A stretch of 64,000 nt of DNA from Podarcis melisellensis (taxonomy: Eukaryota). The position numbers and the translations under genes were made by a program. The notes beneath the pieces were generated by a model. The model ran no database searches and was not told the origin of the DNA. It worked only from the letters and a program-made list of their open reading frames with translations. Shown here piece after piece: positions 688-61,667 of this stretch (its first letter is position 1; every line of letters begins with the position of its first letter). Location of the stretch: the NCBI GenBank assembly GCA_964234715.1, contig OZ174291.1; one strand, written 5' to 3'.

Positions 688-1410
688 TTTCAGTTCATTG
701 CTGTTTTTCAATTCCTCAAATTAAAGGCACATTTCTCGGTTATTTAATATTTGCATTGGAAAAAGTCCTGCTGAATCAAGTCAAAGGTCCATTATAGTCC
801 AGCATCTGTGGCCAAGATGTTCTTGGGGAGTCAAAATATAGATCCTAAAAGCAGCAGCTCCCAACCCCTACATATGATTCCCAAAACTAGTATTCAGAGG
901 CATACTGCCTCTTTTCCCCCACAAAGATTTTTTTTCAAAGTTTCCTCAATACAATAAAATAGCATCTAGAAGAAATAGAATCAAAACAGAGCATTTGACT
1001 GCAGTATTCTGTTATCTCAATGCATGTCCGTGGAAAAACACTGCAGGGCCAGAGCCAATACCCTCACAGGTGCCTTCCCCTGTACCTCAGTGCTTTAGCA
1101 GTGCATAATGTGCTATTTCATAGCAAGTGGGAGACTGTGAAATGCAAGACCTCAAGCCAGGGTGTTGGCCTTTTAAGAATCTGAAGTCTCCACTAGGGGG
1201 CAGAGCCTAGAGGAGGTAGTCTCTAGGCAGAGGCTTGACAGAACTCAGACTGCTCTCTGACTCTGTTGGAGCAACTTACTCACTTGGAGCTACCTGACAT
1301 CCAAGGAAGCTGCCTTTTGGAAGATTCACGACAGATAAAGGAAAGCACATCTTCATACACTGAGTAGTTAAACTATGGGACTCACTCCTGCAAGAGGCAG
1401 TGATCACCAT

Positions 1411-2139
1411 TGTGATAGGAATGTTGAGGTCTTAGATATATGTTAAATGTTCATAAGTGTGCCAACCAAGCACATACATAGATCAGCACAGGAAGACCGA
1501 CCTGGAACCATTTTGATTCCCAAACTGTCCCAAACTGACCAAATGTTTTCTCTGCAAGGTCAAAGGAAAATGGAAAAGCCTCCCCAGTGTCTTTTCCTTC
1601 ACAAATCCTGTCTTAAGGGTATGTCTGTGTTTGAATAGGGTGTGAGCCTGTGACCTGGCCCAGGAACTAAGTATTTATCATTACAAAAGACTGGCCAGGC
1701 TACCCAGGAAATCCAATCAAATAACCTGCCAGACAGGAGATAAACAACAACAGGAGAAAAACAACATTCAAATTTCTGTTTTAAGACTGCCTTTTCTGTG
1801 ATGCAGGTGTGATGTATCTGAGGGGTGGTATTAGGTTACACCCCTTCTGTGATGTATGTATGATGTTTCTGGGGGTGGTCTTGATCTACAGGGTGACAAT
1901 TTCAAAAGTCTTTATAAGGCCTTGCATGCCATTTTTCTGGGTTCCTCCTCCTCTCCTGCGGGTGAGGAGAGCACCCTGTTGCAACAGATCAATAAAGATC
2001 AAACTTACTAGCTGCTTTGCTTCTCAATATTCTCTGGTTGGCCTCTGTTATTCTCTCCTACCAATAGGGAACCTATGTAAGGACTCTATATGGGCTCTCT
2101 ATACCCCATAAGGGAAAAGGGTAATTTTTGTTTACAACA
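1411..2139 (+). mobile_element. Solo LTR, probably ERV-type
   Basis: TG...CA ends, internal TATA (~1911) and AATAAA (~1992), 4-bp TSD CCAT/CCAC; interrupts an old LINE 3'-end-like repeat. Confidence 0.65.
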
Positions 2140-2329
2140 CCACCAACTTGGGTAGCTTTAAAAGAGAAATGGAGGGGGGAATCATGGGGGATAAAGCTAT
2201 CAGTGGATACTGGACACAATGGCTATACTCTGCCTTCATAGTTGGAGGTAGTAATGTCTTTGAATATGAGTTGCTGTAAGCCACAGGAAGGCACAGGGTT
2301 CTTGTGCTTGAGTCCAGCTTGAGGGTTCC

Positions 2330-2641
2330 TGTTATGTACTGAGCTGAATCCTAGAACCATAGGATCCAGAATGCAGCAGTCTGATTGGTCCGCAGGAGCC
2401 ACCCAATCGAGCTCCAGGTGGAAGTGAATCAGCAGGAGCAGGAGCAGCCAATCAGGCCTCTGGAGGAGGTGAATCCACAACCTGATTGGCCTACAGGAGC
2501 AGCCCGGAATTAGCCAGTCACACGTGGCCCATTGTGTGAATCATGTATATATAGCTAGACATTTTGGGGAAAGTTTTATTCATTGCTACTATAAGCTGAA
2601 TAAAGAGCATGAAATTCACACTCGACTCCGAGTATATTTCA
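2330..2641 (+). mobile_element. Short solo LTR (Gypsy-like)
   Basis: TGTTATG...TTTCA ends, perfect 5-bp TSD GTTCC (2325-2329/2642-2646), internal CCAAT-like boxes, TATATA and AATAAA. Confidence 0.75.
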
Positions 2642-4014
2642 GTTCCCCATAGGGATCTGGCTGGACACTGTGAGAAACAGGATTCCAGACTAGATGGGTC
2701 ATTGGCTTGATCTAGCAGGGCTTTTCATATATGTTCCTGGGACTTCTGACCTGCCTGGTTTCCTTGATCTACAATAAAGAATTTAAAGTATGCACATTTT
2801 CGTCCATTTCAGCCTCTGTGTATTCCTTAAAGACATCGTAAGAGTAGTTAGACTGTTCCAATGCTTCCAACATTAGTTTGTTCTCTGACCATGTTCCTGA
2901 TATCTAGGTGTTTAGTTAGTAATATGAGAGGGACTCGGTGTGCATAGTACTTTATGTACATAGGCAGTGCTTTTTTTCTTCCTAATAAAAATTCTTTAGG
3001 GGGTACTCTCATTTTGACTCCAGAAAAATCACCATTATATAGTTCAAATCGGGAAAATAAATACAGTAAATGGACAAAAGCACAAAGATTCACAAGATGT
3101 TTAGGGGTATGCGTCCCCCTGCGTCCTCGTCCCCCCCGAAAAAGCACTATGCATAGGGACTTGTGTAGAGGAACCTGCCTGTTACCAAATGCTATTCAGA
3201 CCTTTGTAAATTAAAATTGGCATCTTGGAAACATACCAACAGCTGGTGCACTTGGCAAAACAGGAATAGCATTTATTTATTTTTAAATAAAACATGGGCA
3301 TATTTACTTATGTTAGGTTATTATAGCCTTGTTCAGCTAACAAAGATAATCGGATTAGAACAGGGTGGGACTGCTTTATATTCTCTCAGAGGAAAACTGG
3401 AACACTCTCATATACTTGCAGTGCTCCAAATCCTCAGTGCCCATGCATGCACATATATTTATATGTACATGAGCACTTGTCTAAAGTCAATAAATATCAA
3501 TTTCCATCCCAGAGGTTTAACTTGATGGATAGCAACCACAAAGGCCATATCCTATTCTGGATAACACCCCACTCCTAAACAGGGAATACACCATAACTCA
3601 GTGGTAGAACATCTGTTTTACAGGTAGAAGGTATCAGATCCCCTGCCTTAAACCATGAAGAGACACCACCAGTCGGTGCAGATAGTATTGAGCTATGTAG
3701 ACCATTCCTCTCCTGCTCAAGAAAGCATCTTTATGCCATATGTTTGTTTTATCACTGCCAGCTTGATGTCACGCTATCATTCCTTTGTCATACTCTTATA
3801 AGTGCTTTCAGCTCTGATTTCAAAATAACCAGGGCACCAAGCCAATGAAGCATTAATCACCCACAATTAATAAATGCCTTGTTGATGAGAGATATGGATT
3901 AAGCAGGGGAATACTGATTGGAAAGGAGGAATACAAAAGGATGTCATCACTACATTAGGAATCAGCTGGTGTTTAGAGATGCCTCACTTCCCCTGGGATG
4001 GGTCGATGGCACTG

Positions 4015-10567: not shown

Positions 10568-10703
10568 CAGTGTTTCCCAACCTTGGGCCTCCAGCTGTTT
10601 TTGGACTACAACTCCCATCATCCCTAGCTAGCGAGACCAGTGGTCAGGGATGATGGGAATTGTAGTTCAAAAACAGCTGGAGGCCCAAGGTTGGGAAACA
10701 CTG
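10568..10703. mobile_element. hAT-type MITE
   Basis: TIRs CAGTGTTTCCCAACCTTGGGCCTCCAGCTG, perfect 8-bp TSD CATTAGGA; internal sequence related to 552-687. Confidence 0.85.
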
Positions 10704-13580: not shown

Positions 13581-15342
13581 TACTCCTGAGGGGTGTTGTG
13601 TGTGAGTGTGCAAAGGAATGTCATTATCCTTTTTATTGGTGCCATGAGAAACAATTCAAATGAATAAGAGTGTATTTGCAAGCTTTTATTTAGTCCACAA
13701 ACATTACCTAATTCCACTATTTATGGAAACATTGTGTTTCTGTTTAAATGTATTGAAGTCATTTGCATAATCAACTGCATTAGTTTTGGCCATAGCAGAC
13801 AGAAGAACGGAATAGCAGAAGCTGAACTGCAGAAGAACGGAAACAATGACTGTGACTAACAAGAATGTGACAGATACCTCTGCCTCCATACATCACTAGA
13901 TACAACCTAGTAGCAGTATTAATATTATATTTTTTAGCAGTGATGAATATATTTATTAAGAGAGAGCAAGCACATGAGCAGAAAAATCCAATGCCAGATG
14001 TTCTGAGGAGGCTGAGGAATCAATAAAGTTTCAGTTCTGAAATAAATTCATAGGGTTGGGATTGGGAATTGGGCCACCAGGGTATTGTAGGATTTCAACT
14101 CCCATCAGACCTTGCCAGAATGACCAGCAATAAAGGATGGTGGGAATTGTAGTCCAGAAACATCTGGAGGGGCCACACATTCCTCATCTGTGCCTAAGGT
14201 CCTGGACTGACCGTGCAACTCATGTTGTCTATCCATCCCTATGAGTGCCATTTTGGCTAGGGGGTGAGAATTACAAGGTTAACTACAAAGGAACAGCTCT
14301 AATGAAGGGTGTGCGCACACTCAAGGATGATGTTGTAGTGGAAGCCAATGCCGTGTTTTAATGGAGACATGAGCATTGTTGATTAATAGCTCACTACTAG
14401 GGGAAGCAGTCGCAGAGCTGCATACGAAGGTCCACCACCTGGTAGTTAGTCACTCACTCACAGGACACGAAATTTTATCCCATTCTTACCAGATACTACA
14501 TGGCATCTTTTTCGCAAATAGTTGAGATTGTAGTGGATCAAAGGATTATCCCAGATTGATTTTGCGATGGACCTGGAGAGTTATTGTCCCAAGAACAGGC
14601 ATGTTGGGGGCCTAATCCAGCTGTGGCTGGCCCTTTGGTTTGCCCTCATGGCCCTTCACTTCATCAAATCTGGCCCTCTTTGAAAAAAGTTTGGACACCA
14701 CTGCCCAAGAAGTTCTATCAAATGTTCTTATTTTTCCAAGTGTCTCCAAAAAGGTAAAGGTAAAGGACCCCTGACAGTTAAGTCCAGTCGTAGACGACTC
14801 TGGGGTTGTGCAAATTGCTGTGCAAAAAAATCTAGAATATCCTCCTACGTATGTGTGTCATACGTGTGCCCTTCCAATGAGATATGTCCCCCTTCCCAAT
14901 ATTGTATGAGAGATGGAGATGTGCTCCTCAAGAATTCAGCTTCTGATCCTTACTGGCCCAGCAGCCCTTCAGCTGGAGATGCTGGCCAAGCAGATGACTT
15001 ATTCAGGATCTATGACACATTCTCCATCTCAAGGCAAAGGAACACAAGAACACTCTTCTGTGCTTTAGAATCTTTATTAACTTTTATATGAACATATTTC
15101 TCCCCCACAGAGGAGTTATTCAAAGAGATGAAAAGAGAATGACCCCCAGGACCACCATGATGATAAAGAGAAGACAACTGGCATGCCTCCTTGAAGGAAA
15201 ACAAAGCAAAGTAAGAAGGAGATGAGAAGAATCCAGGGTTGTAGAAGGAGGCAGGAATAAACTTAAGGCACAGGAACAGATGAATCCAAGGAGTCCACCA
15301 GCATGGAGGAGGCAGCAGCTCTCAACACTTCACTGAACTTCT

Positions 15343-20326: not shown

Positions 20327-21780
20327 GCCTATGGCACACAATCAGAACACAAACACAAGAGCACTGTGGCTTCCAGCAACTGGTATTAAGAACCATTACT
20401 GCCTAAAACTAACCGCCATTGTGGTTAGTAGCTCTGGAAAGTTCCACCTCCATGAATTTGTCTAATCCTGCTTTAAAGCCATCTAGGTTGGTGGTCAACA
20501 CGGCCTCCCGTGGGAGCACCTTTCATTGTTTTAACTATGCATTGCATGAAGACCTTCTTCTTCTCTGGGATCTTCCAGCAATCAGCTTTTAGACAATGAA
20601 AGGTAAAACACATGAAAACACACATGATCTTACACTACCCCAACTGATGGGAGGCTGGGAATTTACCTGGTAGGCTGAGGATAAGTAGATTCAAATGGCT
20701 TCTACTTCAAATCAGCCTCAATATCCTTACATCCTTCAAAAAAGGTACTCTTAAAATCCCAATATTCTACCCATTTTGCATGGAGGCATTTCATTATAAG
20801 ATGGACACTGACTGGCATCAGCTCTCCGGAGATGAACTTAGACCTTTCTGCATGCAAAATAGCTGCTCTACCACAGAGCTTTGATCCTTCCTTCCTAAAT
20901 GCCCTTTGGGGTTTCCTCCCAATTCTATGATTCTATTATTCTATGTATTTCTGGTGGCAGGTTCTCCAGCCCATCATCAAAACACTACAACTGCCATGGG
21001 GGACTTTGTCCAAAGCACTTCGTTATATCAATGTACAATAATTCCTCAGCAGCCCCATGATCCACCAAACTCGTAAATCTATCCAAAAAAGAATTGTGAT
21101 TCACCTGGCAGGAAGACTTTTTTTTGAGAAATTGATGTTGAGTCTTAGTAATCACAGCATCCTTTTCTATGTGCTCATAGGTCGACTGTTTAATTAACTT
21201 TGCTATAATCTTTCCTGGTATTGATGTCAAGCTGACCAGTCTGTAGCTACGTGAGTCTTCTCCCCACATACAAACTGTTTGAAGATGGGAACAGCATCAG
21301 CCCTTGTCCAGTCTGCAGGGATCTCACATTTCCTCCATGGATTCTCAAAAATTCTGGACAGAGGCTCTGTGGTTATATCTGTGGTTATATTCTATTATTC
21401 TATGAATTTCTGGTGGCAGGTTCTCCATCTCCATCCCATCATCAAAACACTACAACTGCCATGGGGGACTTTATCCAAAGCCTTAGCTAAATCAAGGTAC
21501 ACTATTTCTGCAGCAGCCCCGTCATCCACCAAGCTAATCTATCAAAAAAAGAATTGAGATTCATCTGGTATGAACAATATTTTGAGAAATCCATGTTGAG
21601 TCTTAGTAATCGCAACATCCTTTTCTATGTGCTCATAGGCCAACTGTTTAATTATCCATGCTATAATCTTTCCTGGTATTGATGTCAAACTGACCAGTCT
21701 GTAGCTACGTGGATCTTCTCCCCACATACAAACTGTTTGAAGATGGGAACAGCATCGGCCCTTGTCCAGTCTGCAGGGAC

Positions 21781-22279
21781 TTGATTGATTGATTTATTAC
21801 GGCCATTGACCCATATCTAAAAACAATACATCAAAATTTATCCATAATCAATACAATTTAAACAGTTCCAAGTTAAAACACCCCTATAAAACCAATTTTA
21901 CTTCCATTAAGTAAACTATACAGAATAAGCTCCCTCTATGTCAACCGCAATTCAAATCCCTCAGATTTGGGGGGATATGCGTCTTAGTTCTGGCACTTAT
22001 TGATGGTTCTTAAGTTTGGCTAAGCTGTCAGAGTCATACAGTGATCCATTTCTCCTCTTATGAAATAAGACATTAATCAGGTATCTAGCGACTGCAAGGG
22101 ATCTACTTGAGTCTTCGTCGTTTAATAAGTATATTATTTGGGCTTCCTGAGGTCTGTCAGCAATTCTCGATAAATATGGGGCCAGAAACTTGGACCGTGA
22201 AGCTGAATGTAAAGGACAACAGAAGATTATATGATATAACGATTCTATAGATCCACTTTTACAGTCAGAGAGAAGTGAC
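21781..22279 (-). mobile_element. 5'-truncated LINE 3' end (RTE-X/L2-superfamily-like) with (TCAA)n tail
   Basis: Stop-free frame 22269->21997 translating SDCKSGSIESLYHIIFCCPLHSASR... (C-terminal Cys/His motif of non-LTR ORF2); AATAAA then (TCAA)3; whole insert bounded by 14-bp TSD CAGTCTGCAGGGAC. Confidence 0.7.
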
Positions 22280-22313
22280 TCTTGGCCTTTTGGCTAAGAT
22301 CAAGTGTAGTATC
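22280..22313 (+). pseudogene. U2 snRNA 5' fragment (retrocopy)
   Basis: TCTTGGCCTTTTGGCTAAGATCAAGTGTAGTATC matches vertebrate U2 5' region including the GTAGTA branch-site recognition sequence, one CpG-type change. Confidence 0.9.
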
Positions 22314-22648
22314 AGTCTGCAGGGACCTCATGTTTCCTCCATGGATTCTCAAAAATTATGGACAGAGGCTCTGTGGTTATATCTGTAAGCTCCTTTAGTA
22401 CGCTTGGGTGCACCTCATCAGGCCTTGCCAATTTGAATCCATTTAAAGTAGCTAGGTGTTCCTTTGCCACCTATTTTCCTATCTGAGGCTGCAGTTCCTT
22501 CCTTGCACCTTTTATCCTGTTGTCACCAGGTTAGGTTCTGCTTTAATAATAAGTGAAGAGAGGGACAATGTAGGGGTTCAGCAGTTTCACCTCTTTTGCA
22601 AGACCGAGGTCATTCGAAGCTTTTGCTTGCCTGACCTTCATCCTGCAA

Positions 22649-43166: not shown

Positions 43167-45184
43167 GGAATTTTCAGTGAAGTGTTGTGAGCTGCTGCCT
43201 CCTCCATGCTGGCGGAGTCCTTGGATTAATCTGTTCCTGTGCCTTAAGTGTATTCCTGCCTCCTTCTTCAACCCTTCATTCTTCTCATCTCCTTCTTACT
43301 TTGCTTTGTTTTCCTTCAAGGAGGCATGCCAGTTGCCTTCTCTTTATCATCATGGTGGTCCTGGGTGCCATTCTCTTTTCATCTCTTTGAATAACTCCAC
43401 TGTGGAGAAAATAATCTATGTATACAGCAGTTAATAAAAATTCTAAAGCATAGTACAGAGTCTTGTGTTCCTTTGCCTTGAGATGGGGAATGTGTCATAG
43501 ATCACTGCATAAGTCATCTGCTTTGCAAACATCTCCTGATGAAGGGCTGCTGGACTAGAAAGAATCAGAAGCTGAGCTCTTGAGGAGGACATCTCCATCT
43601 CACATACAATATTGGGAAATGGGCCATAGTTCATTGGAAGGGCCCATGTATGACACATATAACATCCCAGGTTCACTAGCTGTTATCTCTCCTTGAATAA
43701 ATGGATGTAGGAAAACCCAGTAGCAACAAGACCCATTGTCTGAGATCTGGTGTTGGAACACTAAAATCTGATTTAATTGATGTATAGTAGGGATTTCCTG
43801 ATAGGCACAATCTGCAGGAGGCTCTCTCTTGCAAATCATTCTTTAGTGGTGCCTCACTTCATAGGGAACTTCATGGTGAGTTGAAGCAAGAGCCCTTTGT
43901 CTCAGAGCCCTGGAAGAAAAATGCTAGATCAGACAAAAATGGGGATCCTTAGATCTAACCTATGGTAATAGTAGTGTGAGGGACATGGCTGAATCGAACA
44001 CCTGGGAAGAGTCTGACTGTGGAGATGAAGGAATGCCACAGTCGGACTCTCGAGATGAGGCATTGCAGCCACAGACACAGCAGGAGTAGGTTAATTCAGC
44101 CCCCCTTTATCAAGAGTTCCCAGACTCAGATAGAGCAGCAGACTCGGAAAGCTTGCAGTCAGAGGGAGGGGAGGAGATAGATGACATTGAGGAATTTGCT
44201 ATGCAACCGGGAGGTAGGCAATATTTAGAGGGATCTTCGTTTGATAGCGGGGGGGGGAGGGGGAGTTCACCCACCTTCTCCCCAAACCAGAAGAGCTGAA
44301 GGGTTAAAATGCAACAGAAGTACAAGAGAAGAAGGCCTGGACTTTGGCGCCCTTCGTTCTGAGAAAGGGGCGGAGACTCAGAGTGACCAACTCATAGCTA
44401 AGAGCAGCAGGCTTGGAGCCATGCTCTGGATGTTAGTTGTAAATAAACGTGCCATGAACCTGCCAGAGACTCATTAATTCTTATTGGAGCTTGCTTGCCT
44501 GCCTGAGATCATTACAAGTAGTAGCCGTAGCAGCAGTATTAATAAATGTTTACAATGATTTTGTTTATTAAGAAGGAGAGAGTCCATGGCCACAGGAATC
44601 CAATGCCAGATGTTCTGAGCAGGCTGAGGAATCAATAAGCTCTCAGTTCTAATACAACTGGGGATTTGAGACTGGCGATTAGGCCACCAGGATATTGTAG
44701 GATTCCAACTCCCAGCAGCCATTGCCAGAATGGCCAGTGATAAAGGATGGTGGGAATTGTAATCCAGAAACATCTGGAGGGGCCACACATTCCTCATCTG
44801 TGCTTAAGGTCCTGGATTGACCGAGCAACTCATGTGTTGTCCATTCATCCCTATGGGTGCCATTTTGGCTAGGCGGTGAGAATTACAAGGTTAACTACAA
44901 AGAAACAGCTCTAATGAAGGGTGTGTGCACAGTCAACACCAGATGATGTTGTAGTCGTCTTCTTCTCTGGAAGGGTCAGGCTGGGGAGGCAGCCTCCACC
45001 ATTCCTCCCCTGCTCAGCTGCTGACACTCTGTCACAGAACCTTGAAGGACAAAATAAATGTCCTGATGGATCAGACTTAGGTATGGGTGAGTCTATCTAG
45101 TTTAGCAGCTGGTATCCCACAGTGTCCAAACAGATGTTTCCTGTTTTCTGAGGGGTGTTGTGTGTGAGTGTGTAGAAGTGTGCC

Positions 45185-45326: not shown

Positions 45327-45974
45327 TAGAAGTGTGCCGTTATCCTTTTTATTGATGCCATGAGAAACAATATAAATGAATCAGAGTGTATTTGCAAGCT
45401 TTTGTTTAGTCCACAAACATTACTTAATTTCGTTATTTATTGAAATATTGTGTTTCTGTTTAAATGTATTGAAGTCATTTGCATAATTAACTGCATTAGT
45501 TTTTGGCCATAGCAGAAAGATGAAGAACAGAATAATGGAAGCTGAACTGTGGAAGAATGGAAACAGTGACTGTGACTAACTATTCATGTGGCAAATATCT
45601 GTCTCCATACATCACTAGATACAACCTAGTAGCAGCATTAATAATATATATTTTTAGCAGTGATGGATATATTTATTAAGAGAGAGCAAGCACATGAGCA
45701 GAAAAATCCAATGCCAGATGTTCTGAGCAGGCTGAGGAATCAATAAGCTTTCAGTTCTGAAATAAATTCATAGGGTTGGGATTGGGAATTGGGCCACCAG
45801 GGTATTGTAGGATTCCAGCTCCCATCAGACCTTGCCAGAATGGCCAGCAATAAAGGATGGTGGGAATTGTAGTCCAGAAACATCTGGAGGGGCCACACAT
45901 TCCTCATCTGTGCCTAAGGTCCTGGACTGACCGAGCAACTCATGTTGTCTATCCATCCCTATGAGTGCCATTTT

Positions 45975-51999: not shown

Positions 52000-53340
52000 T
52001 TCCCTTAAATTGGGGTGAGAGGAGACTTCTGGATAACTGTTGAAACTGTCACACTCCCAAGAATATAATTCCCAACAAATTCCTCACATTTCTTCACTAA
52101 TCATTTCATTGCCCAGAAGGTGAAGGAAGCAGCAAGGAGATTATCTATATTGGAACTGGTCCTTACCAACTGGCAGGAATTCATCATTGAATTAGAAGTA
52201 CTGGGGACCTGGGAAGGAACTGATCATGTCTTCTAGGGTTTCATGATACAGAGACATGGGAAATCTGGATGTATTTGAAAATGGGTGAGATCCAATGGTC
52301 AGAAAAACTCAAAGAGAAGGGAATCCAAGAGGGATGGGAGTTTCTTAAAGGCGAAATATTGAAGGAACAAAGACAGAGAATACCAACAAGTTCCATACAA
52401 TTGCAGACTATTCCAACAAGAAAGAAAAGTTGGAGTCCTCTAAAGAAATCAGTGGCTTATAGATGAAATTTCACAAGGGCATATCTGCTAAATGGAGGAA
52501 ATGAGAAATCATGAAGGAAGGGTATACACCAGTAGCCAACAGTTGCAGGATGACGGTCAGGCAAGCAAAAGTTCCAAATGACTTCAGTCTTGCAAGAGGG
52601 AAAGAAATAATAAAAGAGGTTTCTTCAGCTAAGTTTGAAGCAAGAGGAAGAACAAGCAAGCCATATGTCCTCTGGGTGAAGAGGACAAAAAAAAATGCTA
52701 TTGGGCGAAGGAGGTGAAATTGTTCAACCCCTACATTGTCCCTCTCTTCACTTATTATTAAAGCAGAACCTAACCTGGTGACAACAGGATAAAAGGTGCA
52801 AGGAAGAAACTGCAGCCTCAGGTAGGAAAAGAGGTGGCAAAGGAACACCTAGCTACTTTAAATGGATTCAAATTGGCAAGGCCTGATGAGGTGCGCCCAA
52901 GGGTACCAAAGGAGCTTACAGATATTAACCACAGAGCCTCTGTCCATAATTTTTGAGAATCCATGGAGGAAACATGAGGTGCCTGCAGACTGGACAAGGG
53001 CAGATGCTGTTCCCATCTTCAAACAGTTTGTATGTGGGGAGAAGACTCACGTAGCTACAGACTGGTCAGCTTGACATCAATACCAGGAAAGATTATAGCA
53101 CGGATAATTAAACAGTTGGCCTATGAGCACATAGAAAAGGATGCTGTGATTACTAAGACTCAACATGGATTTCTCAAAATATTGTTCATACCAGATGAAT
53201 CTCAATTCTTTTTTTTGATAGATTTACCAGCTTGGTGGATGACAGGGCTGCTGCAGAAATAGTGTACATTGATTTAGCTAAGGCTTTGGACAAAGTCCCC
53301 CATGGCAGTTGTAGTGTTTTGATGATGGGATGGAGATGGA
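52000..53340 (+). mobile_element. Degenerate CR1 ORF2 fragment
   Basis: PLSIIFENPW...VPADW.RA..VPIFK and YRLVSLTSIPGKII motifs; followed by (ATAGAATC)n CR1-type tail ~53360-53400. Confidence 0.85.
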
Positions 53341-55241
53341 GAACCTGCCACCAGAAATTCATAGAATAATAGAATCATAGAATTGGAGGAATCATAGAAT
53401 TGGGAGGAAACCCCAAAGGGCATTTAGGAAGGAAGGATTGTAGCTCTGTGATAGAGCATCTATTTTGCATGCAGAAAAGTCTAAGTTCATCTCCGGAGAG
53501 CTGATGCCAGTCAGTGTCCATCTTATAATGAAATGCCTTCATGCAAAATGGGTAAATTATTGGAATTTTGAGAGTATTTTGTTTGCTTGTTAAATAATTG
53601 AAGGATGGAGGGATATTGAGGCTGATTTGAACTAGTAGCCATTTGAGTCTACTTATCCTCAGCCTACCAGATAAATTCCCAGCCTCCTATCAGTTGGGGT
53701 AGTGTACGATCATGTGTGTATTTGTGTGTGTTTTACCTTTCATTGTCTAAAAGCTGACTGCTGGAATATCTCAGAGAAGAAGAAGGTCTTCATGCAGTGC
53801 ATAGCTAAAACAATGAAAGGTGCTCCCACGGGAGGCTGTGTTGACCACCAACCTAGATGGCTTTAAAGCAGGAGTTGACATATTCATGGAGGCGGAATTT
53901 CCCAGAGCTATGAACCACAATGGCTGTGCAATGTCTCCAAGTTTTAGGCAGTAATGGTTCTTAATACCAGTTGCTGGAAACCACAGTGCTCTTGTGTTTG
54001 TGTTCTGATTGTGTGCCATAGGCCAGGGGTGGCCAGCTCCCAAGAGACTGTGATCTACACACAGAGTAAAAAAGTGGCAGTGGGGTTGAGGTCAAAGTTG
54101 TTGAGTTTTTTAAGGGAGAAGGTAAAATGTTGAGCTTTTTTTAGGGGAGCCACAGTTGTTCAGAGTCTTTTGGGGGAGCCAGTGATCTACCACAGATATC
54201 CAGTGATCTACTGGTAGATTATGATCTACCTGTTGGACATGCCTGCTATAGGCATCTGGCTCGCCATTGTGAGGACAGGATGCAAGACCAGACAGGCCAT
54301 TGATTAGATTGAGCAAGCTCTTCTTAGAATCATGGAATCTTAGAGTTAGAAGGGAGCCAAGGGTCACCATGTCCAACCCCATGTTTGTATGTTCTTAAAT
54401 TACCTGGAACACAGTCATAAGGACAGAAGTAGACCGCTCCAAATGACCCCTCCAGAAGAATAGACCAACTAGTTTCTTCCACTACCAAACAGTTTCCTAC
54501 AGTGACTCCATTGAGATGTCTTCAGGAAGAATGCAAGCACAGGTTGGAAGTGAGCAACACTGCTGCTCAAGACTTTCCTAACTGCAGATGTCAGTGGTTG
54601 AACCTTACAGAACAGTTGCTCTGCTATTGCTTCTATACCATATATGTGAATGGTCCAATGATATGGTTGGTCCACCTACCCCAGAATCATCTACCTGCAT
54701 CATCTTGGAGTAGTCCTTCAATAACTCAAGCAGCAGTGCATTTTCCCCAACCCCCCTGGATCATTCAATGCCATAGATTGGGGTAGGGTATGGTGTACAT
54801 TGAAAGTAGTGCTGCTCACACACATTGAGCCTCCCCTCAATTCAATTTAAGGTGAAGATAAAAAAAGACTTTAGGAGATTGTTTGCCATTTTATTAGTTG
54901 TCATGCAAGCAGGTACATTGTACAATAAAAGAAGAATTAGAAATGTAGAAGAGAGAGAAAGAGAAAGAGTCACACACATTGAGAGAGTCATGATGACACC
55001 ATGGGAAATGCCTCGTTAGAGATGGCTCCTAGGAGAACATCCAGGTGAGTCAAAGAGTGCAGAACTAAAAGAGGAGAAGAAGACACAACTTGAGGATTAA
55101 ACACATTCCAGAGAGATATATAGTCTGAATGTGAGGAATCAAGCAGTAGCCCTTGCAGTCAGTACTCATGGTGGTGGGATTATTCAATGGACTATCAATT
55201 GTAGATTCCCTGTAAACATTGAGAGCTTCCCTTGGGGTTCT

Positions 55242-59499: not shown

Positions 59500-60590
59500 T
59501 CCATTGCTTCGCTGATCGTTTCATTGCCCAGAAGGTGAAGGAAGGAACCAGACAATCATCCATATTGGAACTGGTCATCACCAATAGGCAGGAATTGATC
59601 TTTGAATTGGAAGTACTGGGGACCTTGGAAGGATCATGCCCTCTTGGGTTTCATGATACACAGACAAGGGAAATCTGGATGTATTTGGAGATGCACTTTG
59701 GCTTTAAGAGGGCTGATTTCAAAAAGCTTAAGTAATTGTTGGGTAAGATCCCATGGTAAGAAAAACTCAAAGAGAAGGGAGTCCAGGAGGGATGGGAGCT
59801 TCTTCAAGGTGAAATCCTGAAGCCAGAAATGCAGACAATACCAAAAAGAAAGAAAAGTTGGAGGCATCTAAAGAAACCAGTGTGGATGTCTAAGTGTAAA
59901 CAGAAGAGCTAGGATTCCAGAAGGGCATGTGTGCTAAATGGAAGAAAGGGGGAATTATAACAGAAGGGTATACACAAGTAGTGAGCAGTTGCAAGATAAA
60001 GGTCACGCAGGCTGAAGCTCAGAATCTTATTAGAGAGTTTAAGAATTATAAAAGAGGCTTCTTTGACTGTGTTTGAAGAAGAGGAAGGAAAAGCAAGTAG
60101 TAGTTCCTGTGCATGGATAAGATGAAGAAAGCTATGGAAAGCAGAACTGCTCAACACCTACGTTGCTCTCCTCCCCACCTAAAATTAAAGCTGTACTTAA
60201 CCTGCAAGCATGATAAATGGAGCAAAGAGGGAGCTGCAGCCTCAGTTAGGAAAAGTGGTGGCAAGGGAACACTACTTGAAATGGATTCAAAATGGCAAGG
60301 CCTGATGAGCTGTGCCCAAGGTACTGAAGGAGCTTGCAGATATAACCGCAAAGCCTTTGTCCATAATTTTTGAGAATTCTTGAAGAGAATATGAGGTCCC
60401 TGCAGCCTGGAGAAGGGCAGATGCTGTTCCCATCTTCAAAAGGGGGGTGGGAGAGGAGGGAAGAAGACCCAGAAAACTACTGACTGGTCAGCTTGAGAGC
60501 AATACCAGGAAAAATCCTAGAAAAGTCCTATTTAACATATAATTAAATAGTCGGACTGTGAACACTTAGGAAAGCATTCTTTGATTAATC
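59500..60590 (+). mobile_element. Degenerate CR1 ORF2 fragment
   Basis: F.AQKVKE.TR....LEL..TN, RADFKKL and CTGGTCAGCTTGA..CAATACCAGGAAA motifs. Confidence 0.75.
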
Positions 60591-61110: not shown

Positions 61111-61667
61111 GCTACTGGGTGGCCTTGGGCTAGTCACACTTCTTTGAAGTCTCTCAGCCCCACTCACCTCACAGAGTGTTTGTTGTGGGGAGGAAGGGAA
61201 AGGAGAATGTTAGCCGCTTTGAGACTCCTTCAGGTAGTGATAAAGCGGGATATCAAATCCAAACTCCTCCTCCTCTTCTTCTACTAGGCTAATGAGGAAT
61301 GACACCCTGTCCTTACCATCGTGGAATTCAGCCCCTTGGAGGCTTAGGAAATACAAGCAGGCTATTTTGAAGGCCACATCTCTGAAGGCTTTCCTGAAAA
61401 TCAGGGCGGGGGGTATGAGGCTCTTGGACGTCTGCCTCCCATATACCTCTCTCAGCTGCCTGGACTAGCCCCTCGCACTCCTTCCAACCTGGTTAGTGGC
61501 AGTTTCAACTCCTGATTTTGCTGCCAAAGTACCTGATAAGGATCTGCAGGCGGGTTCTTTCTTTCGATTGCACCCGCCTGCACAGCCGTGGGGAGCTGTA
61601 GTTGTTCTTCCATTATCGGCTCTTTCCACAGCCAACTAAGGCAAAGAACTTAGAGAAGGGTCATTCT

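Follow-up and report, generated by a model that had tools for sequence, protein, structure and literature searches.

An inverted U2 snRNA fragment joined to a microsatellite-tailed LINE within one target-site duplication in the lizard Podarcis melisellensis

A 546-bp insert in the 64-kb window (the whole stretch of P. melisellensis DNA that was analysed, 64,000 nt) consists of the 3' end of a LINE and, in the opposite orientation, a short piece of U2 snRNA, with one pair of target-site duplications (TSDs) around both parts. The observation as a whole was confirmed as a real and clean chimera from a single event. It is best read as the product of one retrotransposition during which U2 snRNA served as template for reverse transcription primed at the second-strand nick, i.e. 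as twin priming in trans, to which we give a probability of about 0.7. The chimera itself is a dead-on-arrival fragment in an old CR1-like element, a single locus without functional consequence.

Results

Anatomy of the insertion

Exact matches to the 14-mer CAGTCTGCAGGGAC begin at 21767 and 22313 on the + strand, and the 64-kb window contains no others; the duplication described in an earlier note on this DNA (21767-21780 and 22313-22326) is thus confirmed at its stated position. All features of the insertion and of its unoccupied counterparts are collected in Table 1. The LINE is 5'-truncated, and its 3' end is intact and joined to the TSD at 21780. On the minus strand, a frame of 93 open codons (22278-22000, including CKSGSIESLYHIIFCCP) leads to a stop codon at 21999-21997; the earlier note, which had counted 90 codons, had also seen the AATAAA (21798-21793) and the (TCAA)n tail, which comprises three units. 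In the Cys/His knuckle encoded by this copy, the first Cys is replaced by Ser. The U2 piece follows with its 5' end, which is 6 nt short, toward the LINE breakpoint and its 3'-truncated end at the right TSD, whose first base is also U2 nt 40 (1-nt overlap). The single base at 22279 is at the third position of a codon in the LINE frame and may be either the last LINE base or filler. A search of the 64-kb window for a second copy of the LINE family found none.

Table 1. Features of the chimeric insertion and of the unoccupied paralogous sites in the window
Feature	Positions	Strand	Evidence or remark
TSD, left copy, 14 bp, CR1-like target DNA	21767..21780		exact 14-mer
LINE tail (TCAA)3, microsatellite-type, adjoining the left TSD	21781..21792	-	read directly
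AATAAA directly upstream of the (TCAA)3 tail	21793..21798	-	read directly
LINE 3' UTR including the tail, 216 nt	21781..21996	-	between stop codon and TSD
Last 93 codons and stop of the LINE ORF, CxCx9Hx4CP knuckle	21997..22278	-	translation and homologues
Single base between LINE homology and U2 nt 7	22279		mismatch to U2 nt 6
U2 snRNA nt 7-40, antisense to the LINE	22280..22313	+	Rfam U2, 33/34 identity
TSD, right copy, 14 bp	22313..22326		exact 14-mer, 14/14 against left copy
Unoccupied paralogous site	52979..52992	-	CR1-like copy, 96% identical to flanks, ~670 bp
Unoccupied site, local ~460-bp tandem duplicate of the host CR1-like element	21309..21322	+	
Unoccupied paralogous site, CR1-like	60396..60409	-	one mismatch

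Target DNA and unoccupied paralogues

The flanks of the insert belong to a CR1-like LINE on the minus strand, with ORFs that include SYRLVSLTSIPGK and PDEVHPSVLKEL. When 21780 is joined to 22327, the resulting sequence is found uninterrupted in three CR1-like paralogues within the window, each of which carries the 14-mer only once, with one mismatch and with contiguous flanks. An empty site had previously been placed near 52980-52993; it was located one base away, in the paralogue at 52.7-53.4 kb, and there the blastn segments of both flanks join at 52979/52978 without a gap. Two further unoccupied paralogues were detected in addition. As the site is single in all three paralogues, which are paralogous and not orthologous to the occupied locus, the 546-bp insert entered as a unit and with a 14-bp duplication.

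Identity of the U2 fragment

The alignment to U2 contains one mismatch, a C-to-T change at a CpG (nt 10), and agrees with the 34 nt of plus-strand U2 reported before. A local scan with the Rfam U2 model (RF00004) gave 44.8 bits (E 1.5e-7) against a gathering score of 46. The stretch is to be regarded as a fragment and not as a gene, because only model positions from about 5 to 43 truly align and the remainder of the 'global' alignment is forced. At gathering thresholds, Rfam detected zero RNA genes in the 64-kb window. At relaxed thresholds, with scans of the spans 1-22275 and 22317-64000 and the local scan at the U2 piece, the only snRNA fragments in the window were the U2 piece and a U6 piece at 62100-62150, and both of them are inverted at a LINE breakpoint. 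The partner of the U6 piece is an L1, unlike that of the U2 piece. The earlier description of a single TSD-bounded event joining an inverted U2 piece to a non-poly(A) LINE, of another family than in the U6 case, holds. The truncated end (U2 nt 39/40) is flanked by the branch-point-binding sequence on one side and stem IIa on the other, in a region which, going by the established secondary structure, we take to be single-stranded. Our U2 numbering agrees with that used for U2-targeting LINEs (PMC4640811), in which nt 39 is the T of TCTGTTC.

LINE family and clade

When the 93-aa frame was compared exhaustively with 1.8 billion cluster representatives (phmmer), 12 matches were obtained (E 5.5e-15 to 2e-7); in the long proteins among them (942-1117 aa), which have an AP endonuclease (APE) and a reverse transcriptase (RT), the match occupies the extreme C-terminus. 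Judged by these homologues, the window frame is real LINE coding sequence. A word-index protein search with a 92-aa fragment, encoded from position 22275 downward on the minus strand, gave no match. In the JGI metagenomes the fragment query was also without match, and the relative P0032 as query returned one locus (L001, 24% identical) that is uninformative for the family. The match P0006 belongs to a 90% cluster with 17 members, from Podarcis muralis and P. lilfordi. The cluster members lie on contigs of 12-137 Mb from many Podarcis chromosomes and are also found fused into the MEF2B and KIF6 gene models; being spread over so many chromosomes, the LINE family is dispersed and not confined to U2 genes. 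Further relatives were detected in Phrynocephalus and, at 42-44% identity, in Anolis carolinensis.

Full-length relatives occur in Podarcis and Anolis, and three full-length members (P0023, P0030 and P0032; 1090-1117 aa) share an N-terminal Exo_endo_phos_2/Exo_endo_phos domain, RVT_1 and a C-terminal CxCx9Hx4CP..R knuckle, with the end of the ORF about 75 residues further on. Pfam searches of these proteins found no RNase H, zf-RVT or restriction-like endonuclease (RLE), and the best match of their APE was Exo_endo_phos_2. The family profile is colinear with human L1 ORF2p from APE to RT (E 1e-70), the RT being about equally near to R2 (E 1e-55), and the APE matches L1-EN at 1e-10 to 1e-13; no R1-clade endonucleases were present among the 60 of 66 matches listed. 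Some of the more distant relatives carry RNase H or DUF6451, and among the best 120 relatives no Tx1-type protein was found, except for one automatic name at E 1e-32. Judging from this domain content, the LINE is an AP-endonuclease and RT element and not a poly(A)-type L1. The Vingi clade (I group) is characterized by APE and RT without RNase H, with an RT sister to that of Ingi, and by clade layouts Vingi is the best fit for APE, RT and knuckle without RNase H in a reptile. In this comparison of domain layouts (Pfam, PDB sequence and profile searches, ESM Atlas), the LINE appears Vingi-like by elimination, with Tx1 as a less likely alternative. Vingi occurs in reptiles (PMC5753468), and in Anolis it is rare and old (PMC7561263).

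The joint between LINE and U2

Local alignment of 20 homologues showed a conserved block, ..ARFNVFPSNV..RFS[N/K]GQ[I/A]S[L/A].C.C.., which is unbroken through the position of the window's breakpoint, and 20/20 homologues continue for hundreds of residues past it. Upstream of the joint, this frame is interrupted in the window by two stop codons and resembles none of the homologues. As the homologous ORFs read through the breakpoint, U2 replaces LINE sequence at the joint and is not constitutive; a U2-like stretch in the LINE consensus, an option raised by the earlier note, is therefore effectively ruled out at this point. The codons formed by antisense U2 at the joint, K-G-Q, are in register with the conserved [N/K]-G-Q of the family (K-G-Q in the Podarcis family as well), and a local tblastn of P0023 reaches 22290. 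Judged by these alignments, the LINE probably had at its breakpoint a sequence similar to antisense U2 nt 11-18, with GGCC as the core, a type of short similarity by which twin priming joins two cDNAs.

Discussion

Proposed mechanism

In the proposed trans twin priming, the LINE endonuclease would have nicked the + strand of the window after 21780 (nick context GGGAC/CTCAT), within the older CR1-like element, and the 3' end freed at 21780 would have primed cDNA synthesis on the (UCAA)n tail of the LINE RNA, of which about 500 nt would have been copied. A cut in the opposite strand 14 bp away would have left a free minus-strand 3' end (...CAGACTG-3'), which may then have primed reverse transcription in U2 snRNA near nt 40, where a presumably single-stranded segment directly follows the branch-point-binding sequence on its 3' side. 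Synthesis would have proceeded toward the U2 5' end, leaving the terminal 6 nt uncopied. Both cDNAs would have been joined at 22278-22280, possibly aided by the short GGCC-centred similarity between antisense-U2 cDNA and LINE, and gap filling would have produced the 14-bp duplication. A U2 cDNA that starts from the 3' end of the opposite strand places the sense strand of U2 on the + strand and its truncated end at the TSD. The arrangement, with opposite orientations of the two parts and the tail at one TSD, is exactly what twin priming on a second RNA would give. The order of the nicks in this account is tentative, and free U2 snRNA as the template and the role of microhomology are inferred; the in-register G-Q (K-G-Q in antisense U2 and in the Podarcis family) agrees with a short microhomology where LINE and U2 meet. 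The priming end pairs with U2 through the single overlapping nucleotide (C40 of U2, first base of the TSD); if one mismatch is tolerated, 4 of 5 positions pair. Support from annealing is therefore weak. A start at U2 nt 50-53, where 4 nt match the TSD end, with a subsequent slip of 10 nt from one UAUC repeat to the other, also fits the letters; it needs an extra step and was set aside. Template switching of the sense type is ruled out by the opposite orientation of U2 and LINE. The inverted U6 in the window shows that the process operates in the P. melisellensis genome.

Relation to LINEs that target U2 genes

Keno (Tx1 clade, APE) and Utopia (NeSL clade, RLE) target U2 genes and cleave between U2 nt 38 and 39; their insertions are in sense orientation and are followed on the 3' side by U2 starting at nt 39, and the TSDs of reptile Utopia consist of about 20 bp of U2 sequence (PMC4640811). 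They resemble the chimera in linking a LINE with U2, and their cleavage site is only 1-2 nt from the end of the U2 piece in the window (nt 39/40). In contrast, flanks and TSD in the window are CR1-like, U2 is antisense and on the 5' side of the LINE, and no RLE is present. A Keno or Utopia element sitting in a U2 gene was thus rejected on account of flanks, TSD, the wrong orientation of U2 and its position, in line with the earlier note, which had argued against such an element, and with the AP endonuclease of the relatives. Utopia identity was also rejected, since Utopia is defined by its RLE (PMC4640811), and the relatives have an N-terminal AP endonuclease and no RLE, the ~75 residues after the knuckle leaving no room for one. 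The closeness of the U2 end to the Keno/Utopia site is unexplained by priming on free snRNA except as a presumably accessible single-stranded region. We estimate the chance of this coincidence to be of the order of one in five, because inverted small-RNA pieces are typically 33-45 nt long and this region of U2 would be accessible and single-stranded.

Alternative explanations

The same closeness to the 38/39 site would favour a cis event, in which a LINE from a U2-associated lineage (Keno-like or Tx1-Mar-like) had an RNA with a leader of U2 nt 1 to about 40, on which the second-strand nick primed. Some crocodilian Tx1-Mar families do carry U1- or U2-derived 5' heads in sense orientation (PMC4494074). 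APE, RT and a C-terminal Cys/His knuckle also correspond to the general Tx1/L1 layout. Further points for this reading are the colinearity of the profile with human L1 ORF2p, the match of the APE to L1-EN and the lack of an R1-clade endonuclease among the 60 of 66 matches listed. However, the RT is about equally close to R2 and L1, there is no zf-RVT match, the APE is nearest to Exo_endo_phos_2, and the best 120 relatives contain no Tx1-type protein apart from the one automatic name (E 1e-32). Moreover, classical cis twin priming inverts the RNA-adjacent segment and not one about 4 kb off, and priming exactly at the boundary of head and body would be a coincidence in itself. With relatives spread over many chromosomes, and with an inverted U6 on an L1 in the same genome that needs no such head, an origin in cis appears unlikely. 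Far less probable still is a reading in which the resemblance to U2 is fortuitous or the stretch belongs constitutively to the LINE. The K-G-Q of the antisense-U2 frame, in register with the [N/K]-G-Q of the LINE, would speak for it; yet 33/34 bases match U2 nt 7-40 with an Rfam E of 1.5e-7, and upstream of the G-Q two stops and a loss of all similarity stand against 20/20 homologues that continue.

The chimera may also have formed without twin priming, either in two events, with a tailless 3'-truncated U2 retropseudogene and a LINE entering at the same staggered break, or by end joining of U2 cDNA or DNA as filler at the LINE 5' junction. Filler DNA is well established at the 5' junctions of L1. 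The first variant gains some weight from 3'-truncated snRNA retropseudogenes with TSDs, which are common (25/41 analysed U6 copies in Anolis; PMC4476161). Both variants are nevertheless at odds with the structure of the insert: one TSD pair surrounds both parts, with no second duplication or deletion, and two independent hits on one 14-bp stagger would be very unlikely. The truncated U2 end adjoins the TSD exactly, with a 1-nt overlap as priming predicts, and random filler has no reason for the observed polarity. We therefore consider such an origin improbable and prefer trans twin priming.

Meaning for LINE integration

The integration of non-L1 LINEs, i.e. second-strand cleavage, priming and joining, is poorly documented, and nearly all evidence comes from human L1. 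Read as trans twin priming, this copy extends the model beyond L1 to a microsatellite-tailed LINE, which presumably recognises its own 3' end, and in which the top-strand nick would prime on a nuclear RNA that is abundant but unrelated to the LINE. Where 5' pieces of snRNAs lie inverted at LINE breakpoints, they offer a simple and countable marker with which integration can be compared between LINE clades, and between reptiles and mammals. A bolder reading, which we hold as tentative and rather doubtful, is that in this lizard lineage the second-strand nick habitually uses snRNAs as templates, in LINE clades as unrelated as L1 and the family with APE and microsatellite tail. If this were true, inverted snRNA pieces should accompany a considerable fraction of the 5'-truncated insertions, at a rate per insertion far above that in human, and lizard genomes would hold a natural record of how the second strand of non-L1 LINEs is started. 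A sub-case of this reading, a LINE family with a U2 head, would explain the end at nt 39/40.

Comparison with known systems

Inverted, 3'-truncated U1/L1, U2/L1 and U5/L1 chimeras and one U6/L1 chimera have been described in human and ascribed to twin priming, with top-strand priming proposed and seven cases of the twin-priming type counted; the snRNA truncations fall in single-stranded segments that have some complementarity to the target (Doucet et al., 2015; PMC4476161). Like the insert in the window, these chimeras have one TSD, a 5'-truncated LINE with its tail and an opposite 3'-truncated snRNA; a U2 case is among them, and the truncation in the window would likewise fall in a single-stranded segment. 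The differences are the non-L1 partner, (TCAA)n instead of poly(A), the nick at GGGAC/CTCAT instead of TTTT/A, the lizard host, and the 6 nt lacking at the U2 5' end. A recent catalogue of primate L1 only (PMC13174262, 2026) reports an antisense bias for 5' pieces of 5S rRNA (nt 1-45), tRNA (nt 1-37) and U5 at the junctions, for which twin priming is invoked. As in the window, these are short (about 35-45 nt) 5' pieces of abundant small RNAs antisense to the LINE, but the catalogue concerns primate L1, and the RNAs cited from it here do not include U2. The event type is known from human L1, and new here are the non-L1 microsatellite-tailed partner LINE and the lizard host.

Sense U6/LINE chimeras, reportedly described by Buzdin in 2002 and Garcia-Perez in 2007, are said to arise by template switching. 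They resemble the window insert in that an snRNA and a 5'-truncated LINE share one TSD; unlike there, the snRNA has the same orientation as the LINE, is usually full length and results from a template jump of the first strand. In Anolis, sense U6 chimeras with L1, L2 and RTEX are on record (PMC4476161), and the capture of snRNA by non-L1 LINEs of lizards is therefore already known. The crocodilian SINEU and Tx1-Mar families with U1/U2-derived heads (PMC4494074) are, as here, reptilian retroposons with an acquired U2-derived 5' sequence, but their heads are in sense orientation and inherited by whole families, whereas the window holds a single inverted piece on a dead fragment. In domain content (APE and RT, no RNase H), Vingi is similar to the full-length relatives of the LINE in the window.

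Sequence context of the LINE/U2 insertion

The CR1-like element that hosts the LINE/U2 insert carries a local tandem duplication of ~460 bp, and owing to this duplication the insertion site has an empty counterpart ~460 bp further left. A further CR1-like copy matches both insertion flanks; if it does not represent a very young CR1 subfamily, it is a segmental duplicate in inverted orientation and older than the insertion.

Features of the window and a distant metagenome relative
Feature	Location	Strand	Remarks
Tandem duplicate pair, host CR1-like element	20930-21382 vs 21389-21780 + 22327-22386		88-95% identity
CR1-like copy	52705-53375	-	96% identity to both insertion flanks over ~670 bp
U6 piece	62100-62150	+	Rfam U6 model positions 1-49, E 4.7e-4
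TSD copies of U6 case	about 61653-61668 and 62151-62166
Palindromic hairpins, 84 nt (n=5)	578-661, 10594-10677, 14081-14164, 44691-44774, 45801-45884		Rfam mir-5408, below gathering score
L001	JGI metagenome contig Ga0209567_10009169, 4491 bp		match 713-3625

With 24% identity to the lizard LINE ORF, the metagenome locus L001 is a distant relative. The 84-nt hairpins, three of which match the miRNA model on both strands, look like a repeated, MITE-like hairpin element and not like miRNA genes.

Comparison with the U6 chimera and U2-targeting LINEs

In the other snRNA-LINE chimera of the window, a poly(A) LINE has the U6 piece in inverted orientation at its breakpoint. The TSD of this chimera begins with seven bases that recur in the U6 letters ~10 nt upstream from the joint; microhomology was thus on offer, and the joint was placed elsewhere. 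The U2 piece terminates at nt 39/40 (window 22312-22313), 1-2 nt off the cleavage site 38|39 (PMC4640811). This site is common to Keno and Utopia, both U2-targeting LINEs; the nearness of the two positions may be coincidental.
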